The translations under genes and the position numbers were made by a program. The notes beneath the pieces are model-generated. The model was given only the letters and a program-made list of their open reading frames with translations, was not told the origin of the DNA and ran no database searches. From Chrysemys picta bellii (Eukaryota), in the NCBI RefSeq assembly GCF_011386835.1, contig NC_088799.1, positions 58,280,001 to 58,344,000 on the forward strand: DNA of 64,000 bases, written 5' to 3'. Below, one piece after another: positions 2,380 through 41,489 of this stretch (the stretch's first letter is position 1; each line of letters opens with the position of its first letter).

Positions 2380-3250
2380 CCCCCATTAGAACCCATCGAG
2401 GTGGGGCCTCCCAAAGCGCCTAGGTCACATAACGCGGTATAGCTGTATATGTGTGTGTGTGGGGGGGGGGTAATGACCACGAGTCGGGTGCACATGGGTG
2501 GGAAGGAATCATGATCACGTGACAAAGGTGGCTGAGGGGCCGGATCACAAACACAGGCCGAGTGTACGTCGGTGGGGAATCGAGGTCACATGACAAGGGT
2601 ATCTGTATGACGTGTCTCAGCTCAGATGTCACGTGGCGAGGGCCTGGCCTAGCGGTTTCCGCCGTGGGTGAGATGGAGGAGGAGGAGCTTGTGTCACGTG
2701 TCCAGCTCCGCTCCTGCGCCTCGCTCATACGGCAGCAGCAGGAGGCGAAGCGCCGGCGCTGGGCGCGGCAGCGAGCGCGCGGGATGGCGGCGGGCGGAGG
2801 TGAGAGCCCTGCTGGGGCCTCGCGCCTGCTGCCCGCGCGCGGCTCCCTCGGCGTCGCCAGCGGCCGGGCCTTACCTGGGTGGCTCTCCTGGAGACCGCTG
2901 CTCCCCACCACACCGGGACGGGCTCGGCCCCGGCAGCACCTCGTCGGCCACCAGCCCTGGGTGTTAGGCGCTCCCAGCGCCGCTGCTGGCGAGCGGGACT
3001 CCAAACCCCGCTCCTAGCGGGCGAGCTCTCTTTGTTTTGGGTCTGTGCAGCACTTGGCCCGCGACTGGGGCTCCCAGCGCTGGGGTCAGGCCACAATGCG
3101 CTGCCGGGGCCTGCTCGGCATGGGGGCGCGTATGCAGCCTTCGGTGTGTCTGAGCGTCCCTTGCTTACGGGCGCTACTGTTGTTAGGCCTTCTCTGTGTC
3201 GCCCATGGCGCCCGCAGCCTGCTCACACTGCAGGGTGGGGAACACGCCCT
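2380..3250. promoter_or_regulatory. CpG island and promoter of FUNDC2, with a cluster of TCAC(G/A)TG E-boxes
   Basis: GC- and CpG-rich tract around exon 1. E-boxes: ATCACGTGAC 2514-2523, GTCACATGAC 2585-2594, GTCACGTGGC 2628-2637, GTCACGTGTC 2693-2702. Confidence 0.75.
2673..2799 (+). CDS. FUNDC2: FUN14 domain-containing protein 2, coding exon 1 (alternative in-frame start at 2784, MAAGG)
   Basis: ATG 2673 and in-frame ATG 2784; donor G|GTGAGA at 2800, phase 1 matches exon 2. The 37-aa extension before MAA parallels the human FUNDC2 architecture. Confidence 0.75.
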
Positions 3251-3924
3251 CTGGCCATCGGGAGACGCGCACACACACTGCAGCCCCAGGCACTCTTCCA
3301 GTGTGTGGCTTGTTGCCCCATCCTATTGCCCTCCTGTATGTCTCGCTTCTGTGGCGACTGTAAGTTCTCTGGGTCATTAGTCGTTTCTCCGTATCTGTGC
3401 ATGCTCTTAGTGTTCTGTAAAACAGCTTGTAAACTGTCAGACAGGATCTCTGCCCCAGTGAAAGATAATTGGGTTTAAAAATAAACGTGGTAGTCGCTAA
3501 GGTTAACTGGGATTAATTCTACTGCTGTTAGCCTGGTTTTTGTGGCTTTCATTTTTCAAATCCTGATAATGTAGATTGTGCTGCTTTGATAATGGCAAAT
3601 GTAGCCTTGTACATTTAGTGAAATCCGTATTCCCAGACAAATGGTGGATGTCAATGGACCATCCTCACCTATGTGAAAACATTTCCCCATCAGTGAGAAC
3701 AGTAAATTCTGAGACCAGGTGTGGTTTCAAAACACAGCTAAAGGTTGCCTTAGTTTGTAAGTTTTAGAATGTTTTAAAGCATCATTTTAATTAGCTCCTG
3801 ATCACTGCTTGATTTTGAATTTTTAATGTTGATTAGGTAGTATGGTATCTTTTTAATATAAAATCAGACTCAAATTTCTAGTCTGGGTCCATTCAAAACA
3901 GAGTAGAGTCAGGAAGCCTCAATT

Positions 3925-22764: not shown

Positions 22765-25700
22765 AGGAAAACTGTGAGTGTGGGCAGGAAGAAGGTTACA
22801 GCGTGGAGGGACACTGGAGCACATGTGTCAGCTATCCACCAATCCTTAGTAGACCCCAAATTTGTCAACCCAGAGGCCCAAGTGACAATTCAACCATTCA
22901 TGTCAAAATCTTTAAACTTACCTACGGCTAAGTTGCCTGTCCAGTACAAGGGCTGGTCAGGAATGTGGACTTTTGCAGTCTATGATGATTATCCCATTCC
23001 CATGCTGCTAGGGGAAGATTTGGCCAACCATGTGAAGCTAGCCAAGAGGGTGGGAATGGTCACCTGCAGCCAGGCTAAGCAAGCTTTAACACCTATCCCT
23101 GTTCCTGAGCCTTCCACCAGGGCCTCGCCTGTGTTACCAGAGACCCAGACAGAGGTGGTGGAACCAGATCCCCTGCCAACGACTGCAACAGCCGTAGTGG
23201 ATCCAGTTCCAGAAACCCAGCCAAAGCCAGCCCCAGAACCGGAACTGGCAACGCAACCAGCACCAGAATGATTGCCAGCACTGAGTCCAGCGCTTGCAAA
23301 CCCATCTACAACTTCAACACCAGAAGGCACCACCGAGCCTGCACTGGCAGCAGCAGCAGATAACCCTACACAAGAGGCTCAGCCAGAGCCTGAAATACCA
23401 CATAGTGCACCAGCAGAGAGCAGTTCACCATCAACAGAAACAGCCCCATCACCTGCATCACTTCCAGAGGGACCAAGCCCAGGTCCACAATCCAGTGAGG
23501 AACTGATGTCTCTAGCATCAAGGGAACTGTTCCAGGCCGAACAGGAAGCAATGACAGCCTCCAGGGAGCTTGGATGGTGGAACGGAGCAACCCACCGCCT
23601 CTCAGCTCCTCTAATCAATCCGTTTGTTGTAGAAAGAGGACTTTTATACAAGGAAACTCTTTCTGGTGGGCATCAGGAAGATTGGCATCCTCAGAGACAG
23701 TTGGTAGTTCCAACTAAGTACCAGGTAAAGCTCTTGAGCTTAGCCCATGAGCATCCTAGTGGCCATGCTGGGGTGAACAGGACCAAAGACCGTTTGGGGA
23801 GGTCATTCCACTGGGAGGGAATGGGTAAGGATGTTTCTACTTATGTCTGGTCTTGTGACGTGTGCCAAAGAGTGGGAAAACCCCAAGACCAGGTCAAAGC
23901 CCCTCTTCAGCCACTCCCCATAATTGAGGTCCCATTTCAGCGAGTAGCTGTGGATATTCTGGGTCCTTTCCCAAAGAAGACACCCAGAGGAAAGCAGTAC
24001 ATACTGACTTCCATGGTTGCTTGCTACCCGAGGGCCGGAAGCAATAGCTCTAAGCAACATCAGGGCTAAAAGTGTGTGCCAGGCCCTAACAGACATTTTT
24101 GCCAGGGTAGGTTGTCCCTCTGACATCCTTACCGATTCAGGAACTAATTTCCTGGCCGGGACCATGAAAAGCCTGTGGGAAGCTCATGGGGTGAACCATT
24201 TGGTTGCCACCCCTTACCACCATCAAACAAATGGCCTGGTGGAGAGGTTTAATGGGACTTTGGGGGCCATGATAGGTAAATTCATAAATGAGCACTCCAA
24301 TGATTGGGACATAGTGTTGCAGCAGTTGTTCTTTGCCTACAGGACTGTACCAAATCCCAGTTTAGGGTTTTCATCATTTGAACTTGTATATGGCTGCGAG
24401 GTTAAGGGCCCATTACAATTGGTAAAGCAGAAATGGGAGGGGTTTGTGCCTTCTCCAGGAACTAACATTCTGGACTTTGTAAACAACCTACAAAACACCC
24501 TCCGAACCTCGTTAGCCTTTGCTAGAGAAAACCTAAAAGATGCTCAGGAAGAGCAAAAAGCCTGATATAATAAACATGCCAAAGAGCATTCCTTCAAAGT
24601 AAGGGACCAGGTCATGGTTGTGAAGGCGCTCCAGGCCCATAAGATGGAAGCATCGTGGGAAGGGCCTTCACGGTCCAAGAGCGCCTGGGAGCTGTTAATT
24701 ATCTCATAACATTCCCCACCTCAAATTTAAAGCCTAAAGTGTACCATGTTAATTCTCTAAAGCCCTTTTATTCCAGAGAATTAAAAGTTTGTCAGTTCAC
24801 AGCCCAGGGAGGAGATGACGCTGAGTGGCCTGAAGGTGTCTATTATGAAGGAAAAAGTGACAGTGGTGTGGAAGAGGTGAACCTCTCCATGACCTTTGGA
24901 TGTATGCAGCAACAGCAGATGAAGGAGCTGCGCACTAGCTTCGCGCCGATATTCTCAGCCACCCCAGGACGGACCAAATGGGCATCCCACTCCATTGACA
25001 GCGGTAATGCTCACCCAATTAGAGTCCAACCTTACCGGGTGTCTCCTCATGCTAAAACTGCTATAGAATGGGAAATCAAGGATATGCTACAGATGGATAT
25101 AATCCACCCCTCTGACAGTGCATGGGCATCTTTAGTGGTTCTAGTTCCCAAACCAGATGGGGAGATACGTTTTTGCGTGGTCTACCGTAAACTAAATGCT
25201 GTAACTCGCACAGGTAACTATCCAGTGCCACGCACAGATGAACTATTGGAGAAACTGGGACGTGCCCAGTTCATCTCTACCTTAGACTTAACCAAGGGGT
25301 ACTGGCAGGTACCGCTAGATGAATCCGCCAAGGAAAGTTCAGCCTTCATCACCCATGTCGGGCTCCCTTTTGGGCTGCGAAATGCACCCACCACCTTTCA
25401 AAAACTTGTAGATGGTTGCCTAGAGGGATTGGGAGAATCTGCCGTCACCTACCTTGACAATGTGGCCATCTTTTCTGATTCATGAGGAGAACACCTGGAG
25501 TACCTGGAAAAAGTCTTTGATTGCATAAGGCAGGCAGGACTAACTGTTAAGGCTAAAAAGTGTCAGATAGGCCTAAACAGAGTGACTTACCTTGGACACC
25601 AGGTGGGTCAAGGAACTATAAACCCCCTACAGGCCAAAGTGGATGCTCTCCAAAAGTGGCCTGTCCCAAAGTCAAAGAAACAGGTCCAATCCTTCTTAGG

Positions 25701-26230
25701 CTTGGCCGGATATTACAGGAGATTTGTACCACACTACAGCCAAATCACTGCCCCACTAACAGACCTAACCAAAAAGAAACAGCCAAATGCAGTTCAATGG
25801 ACTGAAGTGTCAGAAGGCCTTTAACCAGTTTAAAGCGACACTCATGTCTGACCCTGTGCTAAGGGCTCCAGACTTTGACAAACCGTTCCTAGTAACCACA
25901 GATGCGTCTGGACGTGGTGTGGGAGCAGTTTTAATGCAGGAAGGACCGGATCAAGAATTCCATCCTGTCGTGTTTCTCAGCAAGAAACTGTCTGAGAGGG
26001 AAAGCCACTGGTCAGTCAGCAAAAGGGAATGCTACGCCATTGTGTACACGCTGGAAAAAACTATGCCCATACATTTGGGGGCAGCGTTTCCAACTACAAA
26101 CCGATCATGCTGCACTAAAGTTGCTTCATACCACCAAGGGAAATAACAAAAAACTTCTTCAGTGGAATTTAGCTCTCCAAGATTTTGATTTTGAGATACA
26201 ACACATTTCGGGAGCTTCTAACAAAGTGGT
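22765..26230 (+). pseudogene. pol: aspartic protease, Pro/Ala-rich linker, integrase, RT and RNase H (stops and frameshifts)
   Basis: PR DTG at 22810. IN H2C2 (AHEH..GH..CDVC), VAVD/LTDSG/GLVERF and GPF motif at ~23740-24780. RT DLTKGYWQ/PFGL/YLDN at ~25270-25460. RH TDAS/ECYAIV/TDH at ~25900-26110. Confidence 0.92.
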
Positions 26231-26406
26231 TTTCCAGAATCAATTGGTTAAAAATTGTTCTTGGAATGTGAGACATATTGTTAGTTTTTATATAATCAAT
26301 AGTATGTCTAAAGGTGCATGTGTCTTATTAACTCTGTTTTCTCCTAGAGCTCCAGGAAGAAATCACAGCCAGCGTGGAACCAACACTATCTGTGATTTGG
26401 GGGGCG

Positions 26407-27191
26407 TGTCATACCTAGAAAGGGAAGGGTAACAACCCTCCTATATACAATACTACAAAATCCTTTTACCTGTAAAGGGTTAAGAAGCAGGTAACCTGGC
26501 TGACACCTGACCCAAAGGACCAATAAGGGGACAAGATACTTTCAAATCTTGGGGGGAGGAGGCTTTTGTTTTTGTGCTCTTTGTTTTGGTGGTGTTTGCT
26601 CTTAGGACTAAGAGGGACTGGACATCAATCCATATTCTCCAAATCTTTCTGCACAAGTCTTTCATATTTCAAACTTGTAAGTAACAGCCAGGCAAGTCAT
26701 ATTAGTTTTATCTTTGTTTTCTCAACTTGTAAATGTTCCTTTTGCTAGAGGGTTTACCTCTGGTTGCTGTAACTTTGAACCTAAGGCTAGAGGGGTTTCC
26801 TTTGGGCTCTTTGAATCTGATTACCCTGTAAAGTTATTTTTCCATCCTGATTTTAAAGAGAGAATTTTTACCTTTTCTTTTAATAAAATTCTTCTATTAA
26901 GAACCTAATTGATTTTTCATTGTTTTAAGATCCAAGGGTTTGGATCTGTGTTCACCAGGACTAATTGGTATGGGGATATACTCAAGCCTACCCAGGAAAG
27001 GGGGGTTAGGGGCTTGGGAGATATTTGGGGAAAGGCAGAGTTCCAAGTGGCTCTCCATAAATATTTGGTTAAAATGCTTGGTGGTGGCAGTGTATTTTTA
27101 ACCTAAGCTGGTAAAAATAAGCTTAGGGGGTCTTTCATGCGGGTCCCCACATCTGTACCCTAAAGTTCATAGTGGGGAGGCAACCTTGACA
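26407..27191 (+). repeat. 3' LTR
   Basis: TGTCATA...TTGACA; near-identical to the 5' LTR. Confidence 0.93.
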
Positions 27192-27890: not shown

Positions 27891-29219
27891 TAAGGCAAAG
27901 TTGTGGCTGTAAAAAAAAACTTTTAGCCAGTCCTTTGTGCATTACTGCAACTTCTCTTTGAATGGGAAATTAGGTAAATATGAAAAAGAGCTTCAAAGCC
28001 ACTTCACTTCATTACTTTCCTAGCTCTTAATCAAAACAAGATCCTAGGTTACTCCTGTGACAAATTAATTTTTTATTACAGGCTCAGGATATAAAAACAC
28101 CACACAGCTTCCAAAAATTTGCAGGTGCGGGCCTTAATCATGAAATCAGTCAATCTGCCTGACCATGTGAGACAAAACAGACGACAGAATAAATACCCCT
28201 AGTGAGAACTCATTATTCCAGTCATTTATTTTGTATCATGGTATTTAGAATACAAGAGAAATGGATCTGTCACATGTGCTTTGATATAGCTGCCTATTAT
28301 GTCCAGTAACTGCAGTGGTCTATTATTGTTCATAAAAACCTGTATTTCAAAACTAAGTTGTGCTTGATAGTGTAATGATCACCCAGAAGTGCACAAAGTT
28401 GATTAGGCTTTGTATGACAGAACTATGTGTAAAGGGGCATTGTAATCTCACAAATTCATTGCATGTCATATTGCTTAGAGATGTTCAGTCATACAAGATG
28501 ACTGCTGCTCTCAACATCGTAAAAATCCATTTTATACCAACACCTTGGTTTTCCATAAATACTGCTTTAAAAGATTCTCTTCCTTTAGCACTCCCTGAAA
28601 TAAAATGCTTCTGCAACATCTTTAAGATCATACAAATACTATTGTGCAATATGGTCCAACTAGTTATTAATCCAATACCCCATTGCACAACTGAGGAAAC
28701 AGGAACCTCAGTGAAATGACTTATGGTCACAGAGGAACTGTGGCAGAGCTGGGAATAAACCCCAGAGCTGACTCCCATTCTTGCTTTAAGCACTAGAAAA
28801 GCAGATCACGTCTTTGGGAAACTATAGCTCAATGATAGGAATATTTCTGCTACTTGAAGATGGTCTTGCTTAATGCATCAGATTCAATAGATTCTCCTTG
28901 AACTTATTTCCAGTACATCCTATGCCAGAAGGCTGAATAAGTTTTATATTTCACCCTCAAATTCTTATTCTGAGAATGGATTACTGAGTACATTAAGCAT
29001 CAGAAACAAATTAAGTCACAATAGTTTGGGATAGAAAACAGAATCCTTTGAACAGCCCATCTGTTGTATTGCATTTTACATTTGGTGCACAGGACGTTTT
29101 ATTCTATGATGGATTCTTCTCTGGCTTCTTTATCAGTCTGAATAACGCATTATTTTAACAGTTTTATTCCTTGAGGTGGCCTCCACTCCAGCGTGAACCT
29201 CATAGTTTAGCTCTGAAGG

Positions 29220-29225
29220 TTTATT
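29220..29225 (-). terminator. Candidate poly(A) signal AATAAA for CMC4/MTCP1 transcripts
   Basis: TTTATT on the plus strand ~70 nt past the CMC4 stop; another at 29163-29168. Confidence 0.45.
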
Positions 29226-29295
29226 ATTTGCCACTTGCATGCTACTTTGTCTGAGGAGAGGGCCACGCTCCATAACCTCCTGGAGCTGCAGCCTG

Positions 29296-29465
29296 TTACT
29301 GTGGTGCTGCATGAATCCCATTTGAAGCTGCCTTAAGCTTCTCCCTCTCTCTTGCCTCTTTCTCAAACCCCGAACAACAGATGGATCTGCCCTTGGGGTA
29401 TTGGGCGCAGCATCTTCGCATCTCTTGGAGCACAGCCTCACATCTAGCCTCCAGGTAGTTGTTGG
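29296..29465 (-). CDS. CMC4: Cx9C motif-containing protein 4 (p8 MTCP1NB), last coding exon. Protein is 75 aa.
   Basis: ttttacag|CC acceptor; ANNYLEARCEAVLQEMRRCCAQYPKGRSICCSGFEKE...*. Matches human CMC4. Confidence 0.95.
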
Positions 29466-29880
29466 CTGTAAAATAAAAGAATGGAGATGCTAATCCTGCA
29501 CTAGAGAGCAAACTGCATGAAAAAGGGGGGTTCATCTAACCCAGTTAAGTTCTTTCACATTATGGATTGAGCTTGATCCTCTTGTGGCAACTTCTCCATC
29601 CCATCCACACCCCTGCTCTGCAATAGCTATGCTGCTTAGTTCTGGGGAACTAAGGAGATGAGGTGCAAATAACTCACTTTAATGGAGGAAGTACAGCTGA
29701 TGGGTTGCATGACCCACCTCCTAATTGTGTATCTACCACTGCTAGGTGGAGAACTTCACACTTATTAGCAAATCTTCACTGATTGCCTGCCCTGCAACCC
29801 CTGCTCTCTCTAGCTGGGTTTGGACTTCGGTTCCATTGTCCCACGGATTTATTCCCCATCCAATTCTGAGGTCACCTGTA

Positions 29881-30064
29881 CAGACACTCCCCGGGTTACG
29901 CAAACCCGACTTATGGAAATCTGGACTTACAGAAAAAGTTCCATATGTTCCGTAAGCTTTTTTTTTTTTGCGTAACTGCCGGAGATATGTTCCCGACTTA
30001 TGCAAAATTCGACTTATGCAAGGCATTCCAGAACGGAATGCTTGCGTAAGTTGGGGAGCTTCTG
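29881..30064. mobile_element. Tc1/mariner (Tigger-like) MITE
   Basis: TIRs CAGACACTCCCCGGGTTACGCAA / TTGCGTAAGTTGGGGAGCTTCTG, flanked by TA on both sides. Confidence 0.8.
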
Positions 30065-30774
30065 TAAATGATTACAGTTGAATATAAACCTTAGACACAA
30101 GATGAAGAACATAATGCAAATGCAGAGAGAAACATGGTTTGTTTGTTTTTTTCACTGAAGTTTGTCAAAGAGGCCTTTGGGCACCATAAGAGGGGCCAGG
30201 GATGGGTTGCAACCAGCAAAAAGAATCATTCCTTGGGGGCAGGCAGAGAGCTCTGCAGAGCAGCGTGAGGCCCCCTGCCCACTTTCCTGTGTCTCACAGT
30301 GCCATCAATTAGCTCAAAAGAGCCGAGACTAGGAATAAGCAACCTTCTAGTGGAGGTCAACTGACACAGCTCTCTCCTTCCCTTCCCAGTGCCTACAGTA
30401 CCCCAGGTTTTTAGAAGCAGTGATAACTGTGGCACTCATTGAAGCCATAGTGCCCCAGGGTGCTAAGTGTTCTCAAGCTCTGCAGAACATAGATTACTTG
30501 TCCAACGCCACCTTTAATCTTTACTTTCTGAAACGGACACTCGGCTCGGCAGCACAGCTTGTTCAATGCTGTAACGTCCCAAAACACTTTGCAGGGCAGA
30601 CCACCAATTTCAAAGAATGTGAGGATTTTGAGGGAGGTAGCCCCAAGCATGACTAAGCAGCTATTGCCACAGGTGGAACAGTGGTGCTAGCTAATAAAGT
30701 CTCTGTCTGTAGGAAGCTTTCCTGGCCAGAGGGTTTGGTGACCACCCTGGGGTTACCTACCTTCCCCTAGAAAG

Positions 30775-31166
30775 TAGGCTTGAAAGGACTAGATTTTTAT
30801 TGGTAAATGTCACTAAACGTCAGTTTCACCCTACACACACAAACTGACGCATCCATCAAAAATCATCAAAATTTCCAGATCGGCAAAGTAAGAAAAATGC
30901 TGCTTGAAAACTTAGAGTTTGATTTAAGGATATTTACCTTGTATATATTGTCAATTTATCTTTTCGAATTTCAACACTGACTGTCATTAAGTCACTGACC
31001 CTGACCCCCGATTTCCTGTAACTGTGAAAATTTAAATGGATAAAAATAAAAAAATGTTTAAACCCCATAATTTTGCGCAATTTTGAAAATATAGTTACAA
31101 ATTGGAAAAAATGAAAATTATTCATTGAAATTATAAAACAATGAAACTCGAATTCTGCCAAGCCTA
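30775..31166. mobile_element. AT-rich MITE with TAGGCTTG...CAAGCCTA termini (same family as 63535-63905)
   Basis: Inverted termini; internal sequence aligns in reverse with 63535-63905. Confidence 0.6.
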
Positions 31167-32143
31167 GTTAAGAGAGACGGAGATTGCGCTGCCCAAACAG
31201 GCACTGCTATAATCATTCTCCCAAGCTTTTTGAAGACTAAGAAAGAGCAAACAGTGACCCAATGAGAGACTAATAAAGAGCAGCTTGGGGATTCCAGAAA
31301 AGGCATTAAAATCTTTCCAGGGGAAGAGCAACCCTGTCTGGCTTACATCCTGCCAGGGTAACCCCAACTAGACCCCACGACCATGATCTAGCCTGGGAGC
31401 GACACAGGCCTCCTGTCGTCTCCCCTGTACATCTCGCTGTGCGTTAACAGGAGCTATAGAGACCAGAGGAGGGTACCTTGCTCCTGGTGCTTTCCCTGAC
31501 CAGTGAGCATCCCTTTTAGGTTAGCTGGAATGAGTCCTGGCCAATTAGCTCTCATTCACGTCCCAGCCACTGAGAAAGCAAGGAGGCTGATGAATCTAGG
31601 TTTAATGATGAGGACACCTACAGCTCAGCAGCATCTCTCCGTAGACAGCCTCTCATGGTTTCCCCTACAAGTTGCAGACATATATGGCACAGGGGAGGGG
31701 AGACAGACTGAAACCCTGGGCCTTGGCAAGAACAACTCACGGGAGAGAACCCGCACACCCACCTGGTATTTTCCAAGAGGAGTGACCTGTGGCTCATCTT
31801 ACTATGTGTGAGTAACGTGACCATCCCAAATTCAGGTTAATGCAAACTTTACTCCATACTACACCACCACTGCCTCGTCTATATATCTATCTCCAGACAC
31901 ACAAATAAATACTATCCTTTATTATAACAAATTCTTTGTTGTACAGTAGTGGAGTTTAGTTACATCAAATCAAATGCAATGTGGTGATATTAAAATCTGA
32001 TTTTACAACTACATTACATTTGCAACTAAGTCATTTTTTGTCCTTGCCTTATTCCTTTTGCTAGGGAGAAAGGAGGATGGGGTTAAATTTAAAAACAAAA
32101 CAAAACAAACAAGACACCAAAAAGAAAACATTGCACATGGTAC

Positions 32144-32201
32144 CTTGCAAGCATTTCTGTATTTCACAGGCTTGTTTCTGGCAGGGATCCTTCTGGGGCA
32201 T
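32144..32201 (-). CDS. CMC4: CMC4 first coding exon (exon spans 32144-32211)
   Basis: ATG at 32201; MPQKDPCQKQACEIQKCLQ plus G|gtacca donor, phase 1; acceptor ttctag at 32212. Confidence 0.96.
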
Positions 32202-33119
32202 ATCCACAGAACTAGAATGATAGGAAAATGTTACTATACAAACAGTGGGGTTTGGGCAAGGCACTGCCTAAGACTTAGACCCTAGGGAGCTCACATTTTC
32301 CCTGCTCATATACCCTCCTCACAATGGACAATTGGATGGGTCCCCATTCAAAGCCAGTCTCATGCTGCTTTAGGGTCACTGTGAGACACACAAAGAATCC
32401 CTTATCCCCACAAGTTGACCACAGAGCCTTCCCCCCTTTCCTGTCCTCTATTGGCCCAGGGAGCAACAATGCTTTAAACACCCTAGGATATCACTGGGGA
32501 CAGCTAAAGTTAGGCAAGGAATGAAAAGTGGATGATGGGTATCTTGAAGGGTTCATCTTGTAAAACCCTGAAGATCTCTTCCTGGTCAAATCTAGTTCTT
32601 TTTCCATTTGGCAATTAGTGAACTCTCACCCACGCTGAATCTGAAGGATGCTTAAATGAACATGGTTGTTTTAGTTTAACAGTTCAATTCAGGTAGAGCT
32701 TATTATGCTCAAATATATTTTGATGTACCAACACTGCTGGGGGGGAGCGGCGCTGCTAGGGAAACAGCATTTGTCATAGAACTGCCTCTGGAGAGGAATT
32801 TATAAATAAAAGCATATTTCTGTGGTCCTAAAAAAGGATTACTTTTTTTAAGAAAACGTCTTGGCGATCAGTAGATTAAAACCTAGCAAAAAATGCAGCA
32901 GATGAGCCTATCAGACTCAAACCTTTTTAAGATAGGGTTTTTGACACACAATTTGACCTATCGTCATGACACTTTGAGATCAAAAGGAAAGCAGAGGTGG
33001 ATGGGTTTAGTAGTTGGATGGAAGACTCCAAAGAAAATGCAGATGCTGCAGGAAGTGGCGTTGGGGCATCATTCTTCCCTCTGAGCCACCATTAAGCCAA
33101 AGTTCCCACACAGTGCTAG

Positions 33120-33400
33120 GAGATGCTGATGTACTGTCTTGTGGATAGGATATGAAACAGACATTCTGACCATTCATGGTCATTTACAATCCCATGGCAC
33201 CTTTCAAAACAGATGGGGTATTAGCCCCAGTATCCTGGCCAAACTCCAGTCAGGGAAATTACATTCTGCCTACCTAAAACTGCCCCTTGTAGTTTCAATT
33301 GGACATGACACTCTTCTTCACTGCCTGTCCTAAACTCTTGTGTGGTGCTGCTGTGTGCTGTTAAACAGCTGCCACCTCCCACCTCTGAGGTGGGAGAATC
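33120..33400 (+). repeat. AmnSINE1 (Deu-domain) fragment
   Basis: GTATCCTGGCCAAACTCCAG...ATTACATTCTGCCTACCTAAA...CTGTCCTAAACT...GTTAAACAGCTGCC resembles the AmnSINE1 consensus as recalled. Confidence 0.7.
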
Positions 33401-33532
33401 ATATATTGTACAAAACAAACAGGGACATCTTCCTAGAGGCACCGCTCCTGAAAGACAAAAATTCATATTAAAGGACCACTACAAATAGTTAAAGAAGAGT
33501 AAGAAAGAGAGGAAATGGTGACACTTACCAGG

Positions 33533-33580
33533 TTAATCACCGGGCATGAGTCTAAGCAGCAGCTCCTCAACTCCCCCGAT
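33533..33580 (-). CDS. MTCP1: Protein p13 MTCP-1 (TCL1 family), last coding exon
   Basis: tttacag|ATC; IGGVEELLLRLMPGD* (human VRGVQELLLKLLPDD*). A CTG|gtaagt donor follows the stop at 33528. Confidence 0.92.
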   Translation of the reverse strand: MGGVEELLLRLMPGD

Positions 33581-33742
33581 CTGTAAATTACAAGGAAAAG
33601 TTCAGTACACCTAAACCACTGTGGAAAAGAGCTAATATACCTCAATAATAATAATATTTCTTTGCCCTTCTACAGCACCTTTCCTCAGTGATCTCAAATC
33701 ACTTCACAAACATGAATGACTCAGGTTTGCCACCAGCCTTAC

Positions 33743-33913
33743 CATTAGGTGGTGCTGTATCTCCCAAATGCGAGAGTTACTATCCCTGTACTGCTCGCCC
33801 TCGGAAAGCTGCCACATGTGAGGCAGTTGCGATGGGGGAAGTTGGCTGGGTCGCAGTGCCTCACCCAGGGGGACCCGAACTCGTTGAATCCGGGCCCTCA
33901 GGGTACCTGCCTC
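33743..33913 (-). CDS. MTCP1: MTCP1 middle coding exon (171 nt)
   Basis: cccctag|GAG...ATG|gtaagg; EAGTLRARIQRVRVPLGEALRPSQLPPSQLPHMWQLSEGEQYRDSNSRIWEIQHHLM. Colinear with human MTCP1. Confidence 0.93.
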
Positions 33914-34017
33914 CTAGGGGAAAGTACACAAGAGAAGAATAGTCAGTTATTAGCAGTGCAGTAAAGACGTCCACAATGTCAGAACTATGATCACTGAGAA
34001 GCTTGAAAGTCACTTGC

Positions 34018-34125
34018 CTCTTCCACAGCCACGAGCCATGTTTTACGGCGTTCATCACAGTAGACGCCTACCCGTCGCACCCACAGATGGATGGGCGGAG
34101 CACCGGCGTCCCCTCCTTCTGCCAT
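34018..34125 (-). CDS. MTCP1: MTCP1 first coding exon. Total protein is 108 aa; an in-frame upstream ATG at 34137 would add MVEG.
   Basis: Strong Kozak GGGAATGG; MAEGGDAGAPPIHLWVRRVGVYCDERRKTWLVAVEE; donor GAG|GCAAGT (GC-AG). Confidence 0.9.
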
Positions 34126-35307
34126 TCCCTCAACCATTTGTTATGACACTCCCACTAGGCATGCAGCATCAACACACAGGACACACGCATGTTTCCCCTC
34201 AGCTCTGAACAAATTCATGGAGCAAACTGTTAGGCCTGAAAACTACCTGGTTTCAACGGCGCCATCGTGTGCTCACAAAAAGAGTTACTAGCAATATACC
34301 CAAAAGTCAATTCAGGAAACTAACAAGATACCCAAATGTCATGAGATGCTCATACTTTGTAGCATATGTGGCTGTATATAGCTTGTAAGGCATTTTGGGA
34401 TCCTTTGGGGTGAAAGCGCTATATAACCATCATTACACCCCTTTACAATCGGCGTTACTTATTCCATTAAGCTTTGTGCAAACAATACATTATTTTACAA
34501 AGTGCCTTTAAACAAGAGTCCAGAGCCAATGATGCTCATGCTCCCAAAAGGCAGGACTGGTAACCAACAAGAGGTGAAAATAGCTTAGAAAGAACCAAAG
34601 TCATTCCAGAAACAATCCTGCCAATGGCTCTGCAGGTCTGATTATCTCATACTTGGCACTTGCAGTGCTGCCATGCTGAATCATCAGATCTCTTTGAAAG
34701 GCTGGGAGAACTGCCCATTCATTTACAAGCTTCTTGTCAATAGCCATTACTACTTTGTGCATTTCAGATTTTAGCTGCTAATTGAAGGGTAACTGATACC
34801 AGCGAGGGCAACAGAATGTTAGTCACTGAGGTGGCTTTTTCTATTGGGATTCTTCAAGTTTATCAGCGCTCTGAAGTCTGGCACAAGCTGACCTTAACAT
34901 AATGAAGGTCAAGAAAACTACACTCCTGAGAGCTACATGAGGTAACCAAAACAGTGTATTCTTCTGAGTGCCTGTTCATGTCCATTCCAATCAGGTGTGC
35001 ACGCATGCACATGCATGGTAGTCAGAAGATTTTCCCATAGCAGCATCTGTTGGGTCGGTCTGGGTGCCCCCTGGAGTTGCGCCTTTAGGACATTCAAATA
35101 TAGAGCCCTGCCCACCCACCACCCCCTCAGTTCCTTCTTATCGCCAGTAACGATTAGCTGGAACTTTCCTATGCTCTTGTCTTGGCAAGTGCATTTAGCA
35201 GTCTATATACATAGTTTTCATTAGCTCTGTAGTGTTAATTAAATAGTCAGCAGCCCTTAGTGTTACATTGTTTTCTTTCCCCTCCTACACTCTCTCGATG
35301 CCAGGGC

Positions 35308-37500
35308 ATGCCCGGGTCTCCAGGCTTCAAAGCCTGCGAAGTCTGCGGCACATGTATGCCCAGAAGCGATCCTCACACTTCGTGTTTGAAGCGTTTAGGA
35401 GAGAACCATCAGAAGGATCGTTGCACCATCTGCAAGACCTTTCGGCCCAGGGCATTAAAGGATAGAGATCAGCACCTGAAGGTCCTGTTAATGGAGGCTG
35501 CACTCCGCCCCCAGTGTGACCCCAAGTCGACTGACCCTGTGCCGAGTTCCTCGGTGCGGAGAGCTCTGGCACCGTCAGCACAAGCACCAGTGCTGAGTAA
35601 GGACAAGTACTCACGGTACCATCCCGGCTCCATTCATGGTTCACATGCCACACGCACACACTGTTCTCAATCGCCAGTACCACAGAAGAAGAGGCCAAAG
35701 AGCGGTCGTTCTCCCCGTTAGGCCTAAGGAGCCAGCCATTGTGAGACCCGAGCTGGGCCACACTACTTCTGCTCCACCACCGGTGACAGTTGCATCGACT
35801 CCTGCCCACATGGAAGGGCAGTTGAGTCTGGACCCTCCTCGTTCACCGAGGCCAAGACAGGGAGCTGCACCTCCCTTCAACTCCAGAGGCATTCGAGGCA
35901 GCCCAAGAATTGCTTCATCTCACGGCACCGTTCTCCCCTCCTAGACTGGACACGTCACCGGCACTGGTCGCTCCCCGAGCACCTTCAAGGGGAAAGCCCG
36001 CCATGATGTCCCATCGATCTCCAACCCTGGCGTGCCCCACTCCCGGGCACCAGAACAGACCCAGCAGCTGTGCCAGTCCCCGAGTCCTCGGCATGAACGG
36101 TTGGCTCCTAGAAATACCGCTCCTCCGTGGTCCTCTTTTTCAGACACCTCAGAGTTGGACTGCTATCGGTCCCATAGGAGTGTCAACACAGGACCGGCAC
36201 CCTTACCTGGCACCGTGGCCCGTGCAATGGCAGCCCCCGGAGCAATGGCCCTTTTGGACTCCCTGGGCTTTTCATCAAAGCCAAGTTCAGAGCCAAGGGT
36301 CACATCCCAGGGCAACATCGGTGGCCTCAGCCATGTTTGTACCCCCACCAGCACCATTGGCATTGGCAGGATCAGGGATAGCTGCATTGCCACCCGGTAC
36401 TACCATCCCATCGCCTCCAGCACCAGTGCAGCCTGCACCAGCCCCAGTTGTTTTGGCTCCGACATCTCCAACACTGACAAGGGCTCCGGCACCGATGACA
36501 GCCTCGGCACCAATTACACTTTCAGCACCGGCGTCGGTGTATGCAGTCTTGACACCGAGGGACAAGACCCCATCCGAGTCGGCACTGGCCCAAGAAATCC
36601 AGGTGCCGCAGGACCCTTTGGGTGAAGAAGGAAGGGAGCAGCCATCCCTTACGGGGGGTCTCTTCCTCATCCTCACCGGACAAGGCGCTGGGCGGGCCTG
36701 GCTACAGCCCCAGCCCTGGAGAACAGCTGGGTTCTACAGCAATTGCTGTGGCAGGTTGCCCAGGGTATTCAGGTGGGGGAGGTAGTGGAGGACGCAGATC
36801 CAATGGTAGACATCCTTGCTCCCTCCAGACCTGCACGTATCGCCTTGCCTCTTATAAAGATCATCTCTGACACCACAAAAACTTTGTGGCAGACCCCAGC
36901 CTCATTGCCCCCTACAGCTAAGCACAACGAAAGGCGCTACTTTGTGCCATCCAGGTGCTACGAGCATTTGTATGTTCATCCCCCACCTGACTCTCTCTCT
37001 ATTGATGCTGCCAACCAACGTGAACACCAGGGCTTCCACGGATCCTCCCCAAAGAATCGGGAGGCAAAACGACTCAACTTTTACGAGAGAAAGGTCTATT
37101 CCACTGGCAGATTGCAGCTCCAAATCTCTAATCAGCAGGCCATTGTCAGCAGGTACTGCTACAACACATGTGGGGCAATGGCAAAATTTGCAGAGCTGAT
37201 ACCGCAGGACTCCCGCACCGAGTTTTCAGTCCTGGTGGGGAGGGGGGGGGGGAAGCTCATTTCGCGAGCTTCGCTACAAGCTGCACTGGACGGAACGGAT
37301 ACAGCTACGGGCATAGCCATGACAAGGGGCTCCTGGCTCCACGTCTCGGGCCTGCCATATGAGATCCAATAGACTATTCAGGACCTCCCATTCGAGGATT
37401 CGGCTCTCTTTTCTGAGAAAACAGACAAAAGGCTGCATAGCCAAAAGCACTCGAGAACCACTCTCAAATCATTGGGCCTCCATACTCCCGCTATGTAGCA
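35308..37500 (+). pseudogene. DIRS ORF1 (gag-like): Cys/His zinc finger, Pro-rich linker and LAP2alpha-related C-terminal region
   Basis: MPGSPGFKACEVCG...DPHTSC...HQKDRCTIC; downstream PSRPARIALP...LWQTPAS...HPPPDSL; several stops and frameshifts. Confidence 0.75.
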
Positions 37501-37656
37501 GAAGCATTTTAGACCACAACCTTCCCTGCGCTTCTACCAGCAGAACCATCAGGATGGTTCCCAGAGGAGGAACAGGAGTGGAGGGAAAAGGCCACACTTG
37601 TCATCAGGCCAGAGCTCTGGCCAATCCAAGCCACCTTTTGGCCCTAAACAGGCCTT

Positions 37657-39400
37657 TTGAAGTGCAGTCGAGGATGGCGCACCAGAACAAAAACTGAATC
37701 TACCCCGCCTTACCTTTTTGTCCTGACTGTCCCCTTTCTACTGTGCTTGGTCCCTTATCACTTCACGGCTGAGTGTTCCGCACAGTATAGAGGGGATATT
37801 CCATCCCATTCTGTACCCTCCCACCATCCTTCAATGTCCCTCTTCGGGGACCTCTCTCACGAGCAACTCCATATACAGGAGGTGCACTCGCGCCTTTTGC
37901 TGGGGGCAGTGGAAGAGGTTCCTCAGGAACAAAAGGGCAATGGTTTCTATTCTCGGTATTTCCTAGTACTGATAACCAAAGGCAGGCTCAGGCCCAGGCC
38001 CATCCTAGACCTGCGAGAACTCAAAAAGTTTGCGAAGAAGCTCGAGTTCCACATGGTCTCTTTGGCCTCCATCATCCATTCATTAGATCCAGGAGACTGG
38101 TATGCCACCCTCAACTTGAAGAATGCATACTTTCACATAATAATAACTCAGTCTGACAGAAAATACCTCAGGTTTGTGGTGAACAACACCCACTACCAGT
38201 TCACAGTCCTCCCATTCAGCCTGTCAGCCACACCAAGTATTCAGCAAGTGCATGGCAGTCGTGGCCACGTTCCTCCACAGGCGACAGGTACAGGTCAAGG
38301 GTCAATCCAGGATTCAAGTAGAAAGGCAGTTTGCCTTCATAAGAGCTTCTTTCGATGAACTGGGCCTGCTACTGAACAAGGGGAAATCAATGCTGTCCCC
38401 AGTTCAGCTGATAGAATTTGTAGGGATGGTACTGGACTCGACACACACCAGGGCATTCCTTCCAGATGCGAGATTTCAAGACCGTTTTTCAAGGTCCCAG
38501 ACAGACAGTGTCCCACCACCACAGCATGGAACTGCCTAAAACTTCTAGGACACATGGCAGCTTGTACCTACATAGTACAGCATGCCAGACTTCGACCTCT
38601 TCAATCATGGCTGGCATCAGTGTATCGGCCAGCCCACAACAGTTTGGACAGGATTGTAACCCTGACTTGCCCAGTACTTGACTCCCTCCTGTGGTGGCTC
38701 GACCCACAGGTAGTATTTGCAGGGGTCCCTTTCACCAGCCCTCAGCCATCCCTCTCACTAGTGACGGACATGTCAGATTTGGGCTGGGGGGCACATTTGG
38801 GAGACCTAAGAACCCAAGGCCTCTGGTCTCAGGTGGATCTTGCTCTCTACATCAATGTCAGAGAGCTGTATGTCTGGCATGCCAGACTTTCTGAGCACAC
38901 CTTGCAGGGAGATGTGTATCAGTCATGACAGACAACACCATGGCGATGTTTTATATCAACAAAAGGGGGTGCATGCTCTTCTCCCATGTGCCAGGAAGCC
39001 CTCATGCTGTGGGACTTCTGTGCAGAACACTCGATACACCTGCAAGCATCATACCTCCCTGCAGTACAAAATGAGTTGGCGGACCATCTCAGCAGATCGT
39101 TCCACGACCATGAGTGGTCCCTTCGCCCGGACATTTTCCATCAGTGCTGTTTTCCCCAGATGGGCCTGTTCGCCAGGCAACACAACAGGAAGTGTCAGCA
39201 GTTTTGCTCCTTCTTGAATCACAGCCCAGGATCCATCACGGACGTGTTCCTCCTCCCATGGGGAGGCCATCTCCTATATGCGTCCCCACCCATCCCTCTC
39301 GTTCACAAGGTGCTCCTCAAGATATGGAGGGAAGAAGCTTCGGTGATTCTGATAGCTCCAGCCTGGCCCCGCCAACGCTAGTACACATCACTCCTGAAAA
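37657..39400 (+). pseudogene. DIRS RT, RNase H and Dam-like methyltransferase remnants
   Basis: RPILDLR/NLKNAYFHI/YQFTVLPFSLS; TDMSDLGWG; QNELADHLSR; LFA...YASPP...LIAPAWP. The YLDD segment is absent. Confidence 0.88.
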
Positions 39401-39597
39401 TGTCCATGGAAGCGCCAGTCACCTTGCCGCTCTTCCCAGACTTACTAACTTAGGATCATGGTGGTCTCCAACATCCGAACCTAGAGTTGCTGGACTTCAT
39501 GGTGTGGAAGCTCCATGGAGCTCTCCTGCTCAGACTCGGTTAGATAAGTCCTCCTGGGCAGTAGAAAGCCCTCCACCAGAACTACCTACCTTGCTAA

Positions 39598-40700
39598 GTG
39601 GAAGAGATTTTCAATCTGGTTGGCGCAGCATCATTCACCCCGATGCTCGCCTCTGTGCAATTTATATTAGACTATCTCCTCCATCTCAAGCAGCAGGGGC
39701 TGTCCATGTTGTCAATAAGGGTTCACTTGGCCACCATCACTGCCTTTCATCCAGGTGCAGAGGGCCACTCCGTCTTTGCCAAATCTATGGTCAGCCGTTT
39801 CCTTAAAGGGGTCGACAGGCTATACCCGCATTTCTGGCAGCATGTCCCGGCTTGGGACCTCAATCTGGTCCTTTCCAGACTCATGGGACCACCCTTTGAA
39901 CTTTTGGTGACATGCTCCCTGCTCCAACTCTCATACAAGGTAGCATTTCTGGTAGCAATAACCTCAGCCAGGAGGGTGTCTGAGCTCAAGGTCCTGACTT
40001 CAGAGCCCCCTTACACTGTGTTCCATAAGGACAAGGTCCAGCTCAGACCTCACCCGGCTTTCCTCCTGAAGGTTGTTTCCCAGTTTCACATCAACCAGGA
40101 CATCTTCCACCCGGTATTCTATCCTAAGCCGCACTCGAGCAGCAGGCAGGGCCGGCTCCAGGCACCAGCAAAGGAAGCAGGTACCTGGGGTGGCCAATAG
40201 AAAGGGGCAGCACTCTGTCCATTATCAGGACGGCACGTCCGGCACTTCAGCGCTCCGTTTTAGTCTTCGGCGGCACTTCTGTGGCAGCTCAATCGGCTTT
40301 GGGTTTTGTTTTTTTTTTCCCACCGCTTGTGGTGACAAATAAGCTGGAGCCGGTCCTGGCAGCAGGGAGAAAAGACTTCACTCATTGGATGTCCACAGAG
40401 TGCTAGCCTTCTACATCGAGAGAACGTTACCATTCTGAAACTCGGTGCAGTTATTCGTAGCAGTGGCAGACAGAACGAAAGGTCTTCCTGTCTCTTCTCA
40501 ATGGATTTCGTCATGGATCACGTCCTGCATCCAGGAGTGCTACAACCAGGCAGGAGTACTTGCTCCTTCGATCATTCTACCAGGGCTCAGGCCTCTTCAA
40601 CAGGATTCCTGGCGCAGGTTCCCACTCAGGAAATCTCCAGAGCGGCGACGTGGTCCTCCATTTACACTTTCACCAGGCACTATGCAATCACCCAACAGGC
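39598..40700 (+). pseudogene. DIRS tyrosine recombinase remnant
   Basis: WDLNLVL, ITSARRVSEL, HPAFLLKVVS, HSTRAQASS, ATWSSIYTFTRHY (catalytic R...HxxR...W...Y pattern). Confidence 0.9.
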
Positions 40701-41489
40701 CAGAGATGATGTGGCCTTTGGAAGAGTGGTGCTCCAATCAGTGGACGACTCCAACCTCACCTCCTGAATCTGGGCTTGAGAGTCATCTGATTGGGAATGG
40801 ACACGAACATGCACTTGAAGAAGAAAAAAAATGGTTACTCAACTTCTCGTAACTATTGTTCTTCAAGATGTGTTGTTCATATCCATTCCAATACCCACCC
40901 TTCTACCCCCGTCGGAGTAGCCGGCAAGAAGATACTGAGGGGGTGGCGCGTCGGCAGGGCTCTATATTAAGCGCCATGAAGGTGTGACTCCAGGGGGTGC
41001 CCAGACCGACCCAACAGATGCTGCTAAGGGAAAAATGTTCTGGCTACCATGCACATGTGCATGTACACACACCTGATTGGAATGGACGTGAACAACACAC
41101 CTCAAAGAACAACAGTTATGAGAAGGTGACTAACCGTTTTTTCTTGGTTCTATCTTAAGAATTAAGAACTAATCAGTGTAAGGTCTACCTGCTATAGACC
41201 AGAAGCAATATCCCAGTGAAATACAGTGATCTCATCCAGAAAACTTGTGGATGTACAAGGCAAACATTGCATGCAAGTAATCAAATCTGGGTACAAAAAC
41301 AGGAGGAGAGTTCAGGGAGAGAAAAAAATTATTACTTGCCTCAGTGCAATGTACATAGGGAAAATACACTCCCTTGCTATCCTATACACCTCGGACATAC
41401 CAAATAATCAATTGGAACACTGGCACTTCAAGGAAATCAGCACTGAAGTCATTCAACACAAGGCTTTCTGGAACGATCCGTAAAGGATA

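Follow-up and report, generated by a model that had tools for sequence, protein, structure and literature searches.

In mammals, the TCL1-family genes TCL1A and TCL1B lie at a locus different from that of MTCP1. In human, MTCP1 sits inside intron 1 of CMC4, and the two have a 5' UTR exon in common, with BRCC3 as their close neighbour (PMC8566464; PMC7537572). The mammalian proteins of the family are described as co-activators of AKT (PMC3816220). The turtle locus described here resembles human Xq28 in that the MTCP1 coding exons lie 5' of those of CMC4 on the same strand, the Cx9C protein CMC4 is encoded downstream of MTCP1, and BRCC3 is placed head-to-head with them at a CpG island. It differs in that turtle MTCP1 is spliced to CMC4 via an extra 174-nt exon, whereas the human locus is described with distinct 3' exon sets.

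The window, i.e., the whole stretch of DNA analysed here, comprises 64,000 nucleotides of Chrysemys picta bellii (contig NC_088799.1) and contains no N. A preliminary description of this stretch had proposed three minus-strand exons of 108, 171 and 48 nt forming an intact frame of 108 aa, and the translations of all three were found as claimed, free of internal stops (Table 1). From the ATG at 34125, exon 1 runs for 36 codons to 34018 and starts Met-Ala-Glu, and this ATG corresponds to the Met position in other amniotes. A second in-frame ATG is located four codons upstream, at 34137, where the RefSeq turtle proteins begin, giving 112 aa instead of 108 aa; compared with human MTCP1, the turtles thus possess a possible N-terminal extension of four residues. 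Immediately 5' of this second ATG stands an in-frame TAA (34143-34141), which limits the start of translation to 34137 or 34125, whatever the 5' structure of the transcript.

Table 1. Features of the BRCC3, MTCP1 and CMC4 region (positions are those of the window; a slash in a sequence marks the splice site)
Feature	Position	Strand	Description
BRCC3 (BRCC36) first coding exon	47924..48028	+	Human BRCC36 residues 8-41, E 1.6e-16
Candidate shared non-coding 5' exon, CMC4/MTCP1	47562..47780	-	Donor CAA/GTAGGT after 47562; start tentative; proposed from sequence only; in CpG island 47501-48250
MTCP1 coding exon 1	34137/34125-34018	-	PF01840 E 2e-6; P0019 residues 1-40
MTCP1 intron 1	34017-33914	-	104 nt, GC-AG, GAG/GCAAGT...CCCTAG/GAG
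MTCP1 coding exon 2	33913-33743	-	57 codons; PF01840 E 2.5e-12; P0019 residues 41-97
MTCP1 intron 2	33742-33581	-	162 nt, GT-AG, ATG/GTAAGG...TTACAG/ATC; joint in four RNA runs
MTCP1 exon 3	33580-33529	-	15 codons, TAA 33535-33533, CCTG, then donor; P0019 residues 98-112
Post-stop intron	33528-33448	-	81 nt, GT-AG; joint 33446>33528 (cut +1) in X1, X5
Non-coding exon between MTCP1 and CMC4 frames	33447-33274	-	174 nt; pieces 33274-33446/8 in X1, X5
Intron, 174-nt exon to CMC4	33273-32212	-	1062 nt, GT-AG; joint 32211>33274 in X1, X5, X9
CMC4 first coding exon	32211-32144	-	ATG 32201, 19 codons + 1 nt; joints 32211>33274, 29465>32144
CMC4 last coding exon	29465-29296	-	Cx9C protein, stop 29298-29296; PF08991 E 2.2e-8

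The identity of the three exons was approached by searching them singly and by using for all full-length comparisons P0019, a protein from the databases that is made up, without gap or remainder, of the translations of the three exons. Searched each alone, exons 1 and 2 reached 27.9 and 46.9 bits against the Pfam profile PF01840 (TCL1_MTCP1; cut-off 25), and the profile positions were matched colinearly (10-37 and 54-101, respectively). Since both exons pass the gathering score independently, the match is far beyond chance. P0019 itself scored 89.8 bits (E 1.3e-25) over positions 10-115 of the 116 in the profile. Among solved structures, the best relatives were those of human MTCP1 (1a1x/1qtt), with residues 3-36 of exon 1 aligned to human residues 3-36 (E 3.5e-9) and residues 2-57 of exon 2 aligned to human residues 38-93 (E 3.9e-21); for exon 2 the score was 77 bits versus 41 for TCL1A. 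With the two alignments in this order, the colinearity with human p13 MTCP1 that had been proposed earlier is borne out. Projected onto the human protein, the borders between the turtle exons lie at residues 36/37 and 93/94, and the turtle and human proteins (1A1X, 1QTT) belong to the same length class, share about 56-62% identity and have the eight-stranded barrel in common.

Structure and phylogeny point the same way. An AlphaFold model of P0019 built on an alignment of 52 sequences reached a pLDDT of 83.7 and displayed eight strands (an earlier model on 15 sequences, with a pLDDT of 43.7, was discarded). The best Foldseek match of this model was 1a1x (TM 0.88/0.93, rmsd 1.5 A, 61% identity), followed by TCL1A chains (TM 0.83-0.86, approximately 40% identity), and the next other fold appeared only at E 0.06. 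In the maximum-likelihood tree, the window protein fell among its sauropsid orthologues in the MTCP1 clade (support 94/94), where the branches are very short, while TCL1A and TCL1B formed separate groups with much longer branches. Although TCL1A and TCL1B share the Pfam family and the fold with turtle MTCP1, they thus fall in another clade, and the scores to them are about half of those to MTCP1. The turtle protein has a single domain and, at 108 or 112 aa, lies in the family's range of approximately 105-130 aa, with the eight-stranded beta-barrel seen in the model; bit score, clade and the position beside CMC4 and BRCC3 all assign it to MTCP1 rather than to TCL1A or TCL1B. We are therefore highly confident that the three exons, placed 5' of those encoding CMC4, form an MTCP1 (p13) orthologue in the turtle and encode a TCL1-family beta-barrel of approximately 110 aa.

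The surroundings of the gene also agree with this assignment. BRCC3 exon 1 stands head-to-head with the candidate CMC4/MTCP1 5' exon at the CpG island 47501-48250, and MTCP1 lies on the strand of CMC4 and 5' of its coding exons, as described beforehand; this position equals CMC4 intron 1 if the exon at approximately 47.6 kb is the first one. The CMC4 acceptor is likewise where it had been placed, with the exon starting at 32211 and the ATG at 32201, and the 3' UTR of CMC4 extends below 29296. At another CpG island (2501-3500), where FUNDC2 was considered, the ORFs held nothing recognisable by eye.

The preliminary description had called MTCP1 a hidden gene, and this cannot be upheld, as the identical protein of 112 aa is present in RefSeq and UniProt for turtles, together with entries for dozens of other sauropsids. 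P0019 is the RefSeq "protein p13 MTCP-1" of Trachemys scripta elegans (XP_034637354.1) and Terrapene carolina triunguis (XP_024055020.1), 112 aa in length. These emydid models yield an identical protein and agree in every exon junction, that at the GC donor among them; they differ from the 108-aa reading in starting four codons earlier, at 34137. Further turtle entries were found for Mauremys, Gopherus, Pelodiscus (XP_006111415.1), Carettochelys and Chrysemys itself. The word search that revealed the name "protein p13 MTCP-1" in RefSeq/UniProt for turtles, tuatara, alligator, birds and lizards was confined to proteins between 0.55 and 1.75 times as long as the query. With only the 57 aa of exon 2 as input, proteins of approximately 108 aa would have been out of reach, and the query was therefore the 69-aa translation of 33707-33913 (minus strand), i.e., exon 2 plus 12 stop-free codons of intron 2, of which only residues 1-57 were scored. 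A profile search added the MTCP1 of snakes, geckos, platypus and opossum, so that annotated orthologues extend over turtles, tuatara, crocodilians, birds, squamates, monotremes and marsupials. MTCP1 is missing only from the prokaryote-style ORF track, which is blind to spliced genes. Turtle MTCP1, its exon structure and its spread in sauropsids are already known in RefSeq/UniProt.

As a discovery, therefore, the locus carries little weight: the gene is annotated, and the nested CMC4/MTCP1 layout is textbook knowledge for human Xq28. What the present study adds is modest: turtle RNA support for two predicted splice sites, a linking non-coding exon, a GC-AG first intron, and a family-wide search suggesting that the TCL1 family is confined to amniotes. 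Our literature search returned no paper on MTCP1 in turtles or on how MTCP1 evolved among amniotes, so that there would be room for a brief comparative account of where this oncogene family came from, though a specialist would find it unsurprising.

For the RNA evidence, the region 29100-34900 (5,801 letters) was compared with the contigs of four runs (X1, X5, X8 and X9), which come from four studies and carry three organism codes. The label RNA was a guess for these runs; that the contigs derive from spliced RNA is shown by their joints, which are GT-AG on the minus strand. The predicted junction 33743>33580 was recovered exactly, intron 2 being removed as expected in all four runs, i.e., in four studies and three turtle organisms. 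The splice sites had all been described beforehand as valid, and this stands for the GT-AG borders of intron 2 and for the donor after the stop, but not in the same sense for intron 1, the donor of which is GC and not GT. GC-AG introns are a recognised minority class. The joint of exon 1 to exon 2 (34018>33913) was not among the joints listed, beside which there are nine further ones. In X1, X8 and X9 there are RNA contigs that stop precisely at 34017, the edge of the intron 1 donor, and one X8 contig continues past it with 16 extra letters that do not match intron 1. The exon 1-exon 2 junction thus rests on these contig ends, on the RefSeq protein P0019 and on the conserved frame. Retention of intron 1 leads to a stop eight codons past exon 1. 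The weak GC donor would be a likely control point for p13, because retention cuts the protein off after 48 residues.

Such retention brings to mind a quite different explanation, namely a relic: the exons would be in decay or without function, merely transcribed within the CMC4 pre-mRNA and not yielding a protein of consequence. One contig of X5 indeed keeps intron 1, human p13 has been reported absent from normal tissues (PMC7537572), and the three turtle organisms are too close to each other to measure selection, showing 0 differences in the 327 coding nt, where, at the approximately 0.55% of the flanking non-coding sequence, only about 1.8 would be expected. Deeper comparisons speak against decay. 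The frame is intact, and identity to P0019 amounts to 96-97% in soft-shelled turtles, 92% in the alligator, 84-86% in birds, 72-80% in squamates and still 65% in platypus and opossum; 41 alignment columns are invariant over sauropsids, the branches of the MTCP1 clade are very short in comparison with those of TCL1A/TCL1B, and splicing is precise in four studies. Taken together, we regard a relic as scarcely credible. Identity that stays so high across amniotes indicates strong purifying selection on MTCP1 for more than 300 million years.

Downstream of the p13 frame, the donor CTG/GTAAGT four nucleotides after the stop, which had been predicted from the letters, is in place and is used, joining 33447>33529 in two runs. 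From this donor a direct splice to the CMC4 acceptor had been expected. The path does reach 32211, but it first passes through the 174-nt exon, and the direct junction 33529>32211 was not seen among the joints listed (nine others are outside the list). The 174-nt exon has stops in two frames, its third frame is without an ATG, and three ATGs are present in the exon as a whole. The joint 29465>32144 of the CMC4 intron occurs in all four runs. RNA contigs therefore join exon 2 to exon 3, exon 3 to the 174-nt exon, the latter to the first CMC4 coding exon, and this one to the last. Since the donor after the stop leads by way of the 174-nt exon to the first coding exon of CMC4, the exons of MTCP1 and CMC4 are shown to form one transcription unit, through a chain of contigs and not as one proven molecule. 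Counted over the exon pieces, the distance from the p13 stop to the p8 ATG is 188 nt. On transcripts with the MTCP1 exons, the p13 frame would hence come first, followed 188 nt later by the p8 (CMC4) frame, while transcripts that skip the MTCP1 exons would give p8 only, as described for human Xq28.

A shared unit of this kind could, in principle, also yield a fusion of p13 and p8. Three gene models, P0040 (Limosa), P0059 (Hirundo) and P0095 (mammal), join MTCP1 and CMC4 parts (PF01840 and PF08991) in frame, which is compatible with one transcription unit in birds and mammals too. In the turtle, the structure of the transcript argues strongly against a fused product: the MTCP1 stop sits four nucleotides ahead of the donor in use, the exon that follows is closed by stops in two of its frames and lacks an ATG in the remaining one, and a splice from exon 1 straight to 32211 would miss the frame of the CMC4 ATG on account of its 10-nt leader and is not represented among the joints listed. 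We consider a p13-p8 fusion protein highly improbable here, and two separate frames on one transcript are the preferred reading.

The 5' end of the MTCP1 RNA is less straightforward. The junction 47562>34154 proposed earlier would join the candidate 5' exon, which lies outside the region compared with the contigs, to an acceptor at 34154. Exon 1 contigs cross this proposed acceptor unbroken in all four runs, and they reach upstream to 34323 (X9), to 34562 and 34853 (X8), and to approximately 35100-35130 (X1 and X5). The contig end of X9 was considered as an acceptor at 34323 and rejected, there being no AG at that point (the nearest is at 34321-34320). The RNA upstream of 34154 may represent unspliced precursor, or it may come from a start site inside the intron; the former receives support from the 1062-nt intron 32212-33273, since this intron is also spanned by unspliced contigs (pieces 32185-33303).

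Developed further, a start site inside the intron would make turtle MTCP1 mainly a gene of its own, with an internal promoter inside the CMC4 intron, at most approximately 1 kb upstream of the ATG, in place of the shared 5' exon beside BRCC3, and with only the 3' part shared with CMC4. It is in favour of this thought that the contigs pass 34154 unbroken in every run and yet break at the donor of intron 1, and that a work cited in PMC8566464 bears in its title the words "alternative origin of p13MTCP1-encoding transcripts", for human tumours. On the other hand, the unspliced coverage of the 1062-nt intron means that the upstream contigs are possibly pre-mRNA, contigs cannot show where an RNA starts, and in human the shared exon 1 serves MTCP1 (PMC7537572). 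Moreover, there is no CpG island directly upstream of the gene; the nearest CpG-rich stretch, at 35251-36250, is dense in ORFs on the opposite strand and was not counted as an internal CpG-island promoter. An independent promoter thus appears unlikely to us.

Turning to the age of the family, the preliminary description had placed the origin of the locus before the mammal-reptile split, and this holds, because sauropsids, monotremes, marsupials and eutherians all possess MTCP1. A profile search of 1.84 billion protein representatives produced 90 matches at E <= 0.001, all of which, judged by eye, represent whole or partial sequences of MTCP1 from sauropsids or of MTCP1, TCL1A or TCL1B from mammals. 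Those ten whose origin was least evident were looked up, and every one of them belonged to an amniote (bats, rodents, a galago and turtles). Of two other proteins, judged by sequence only, P0051 is lizard-like and P0062 resembles bat TCL1A. None of the 90 matches is an amphibian or fish protein, and it should be borne in mind that such tiny exons may be poorly predicted in other genomes. This distribution, which is an absence from protein databases, fits a putative origin of the TCL1 family in the amniote stem.

As to function, homology would make turtle MTCP1 a small adaptor barrel like the mammalian TCL1-family proteins, for one of which, TCL1A, the structure search also returned PDB entries of complexes with DNMT3A and NLRP7. 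In TCL1A, Asp16 and Ile74 are the residues needed for AKT binding. At the position occupied by Asp in mammals (PP-D-HLW; before H/R-L-W), sauropsid MTCP1 carries Ile or Val, and at that occupied by Leu or Ile (LP-L-MWQL; before M-W-Q-L) it has an invariant His, so that it differs from human MTCP1 at both (Ile/Val for Asp, His for Leu). Since these two positions differ in sauropsids, we would infer AKT binding and co-activation for the turtle protein from homology only.

Finally, these observations may be drawn together in a tentative scenario. The TCL1 family would be a novelty of amniotes, having originated within the CMC4 unit; sauropsid MTCP1 would normally be the first frame of an MTCP1-CMC4 mRNA, gated by a conserved weak GC donor; and its partner would be a protein other than AKT, given that the mammalian Asp and Ile/Leu positions are Ile/Val and His throughout sauropsids. 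That all of this should hold jointly seems to us rather doubtful. As regards the donor, bird gene models that read past exon 1 begin with Ala-Ser, just as GCA AGT would.

Three bird gene models (P0040, from Limosa, P0058 and P0060) extend beyond exon 1 of MTCP1 with Ala-Ser, which matches the GCA AGT that follows this exon in the turtle; the GC donor of MTCP1 intron 1 is thus probably common to turtles and birds.

Turtles also carry a second, highly divergent TCL1-family gene outside the window (database proteins P0094 and P0141-P0146), which is annotated as 'protein p13 MTCP-1-like' in Pelodiscus, Emydura, Mauremys, Chelydra and Chrysemys and is sited on contigs of 361-375 Mb. Its product passes the Pfam test for PF01840, shares 42% identity with the window's MTCP1, and falls on a long branch within sauropsid MTCP1 in the tree.

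Around CMC4 and MTCP1 exon 1, we examined the contigs of four turtle runs taken to be RNA. At 32144-32692 (-), the contig of organism C (run X8) that holds the CMC4 exons continues through the acceptor at 32211 as far as 32692, so that either the intron is retained or CMC4 transcription begins nearer to this exon. An 18-nt insertion lies behind 32252 in organisms B and C. Further upstream, a contig of run X9 matches the genome only up to 34323 (-) and ends in 24 letters that do not fit it, although the window sequence holds no AG acceptor at that point. Within the CMC4 intron, each of the four runs showed numerous odd joints and loose contig ends at two short stretches (see the table), which behave like a dispersed repeat of which many loci are expressed.

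Features of the window outside the MTCP1/CMC4 exons
Feature	Position	Strand	Remarks
LTR-retroelement pol fragments	23272-26432	+	downstream of CMC4; integrase zinc-binding domain, integrase core, reverse transcriptase
Repeat-like short stretches	30800-31170; 29876-30069		CMC4 intron; summed contig depth very high
ORF-dense, GC-rich stretch	35260-40850	+	large intron; many ORFs of 70-291 aa, one strand
Strong CpG island	2501-3500		GC 0.69-0.73; CpG observed/expected 0.8-0.9

The CpG island may serve as promoter for the neighbouring gene, which in human is FUNDC2, but the ORFs at the island, judged by eye, revealed nothing recognisable. As for the ORF-dense stretch of the large intron, one of its ORFs bears, again by eye, reverse-transcriptase-like motifs, a Pfam search with three of the ORFs returned no match at E<=0.001, and in runs X1 and X5 RNA contigs stop near the border of the stretch. 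Finally, the order of the domains in the pol fragments suggests rearranged or nested copies.
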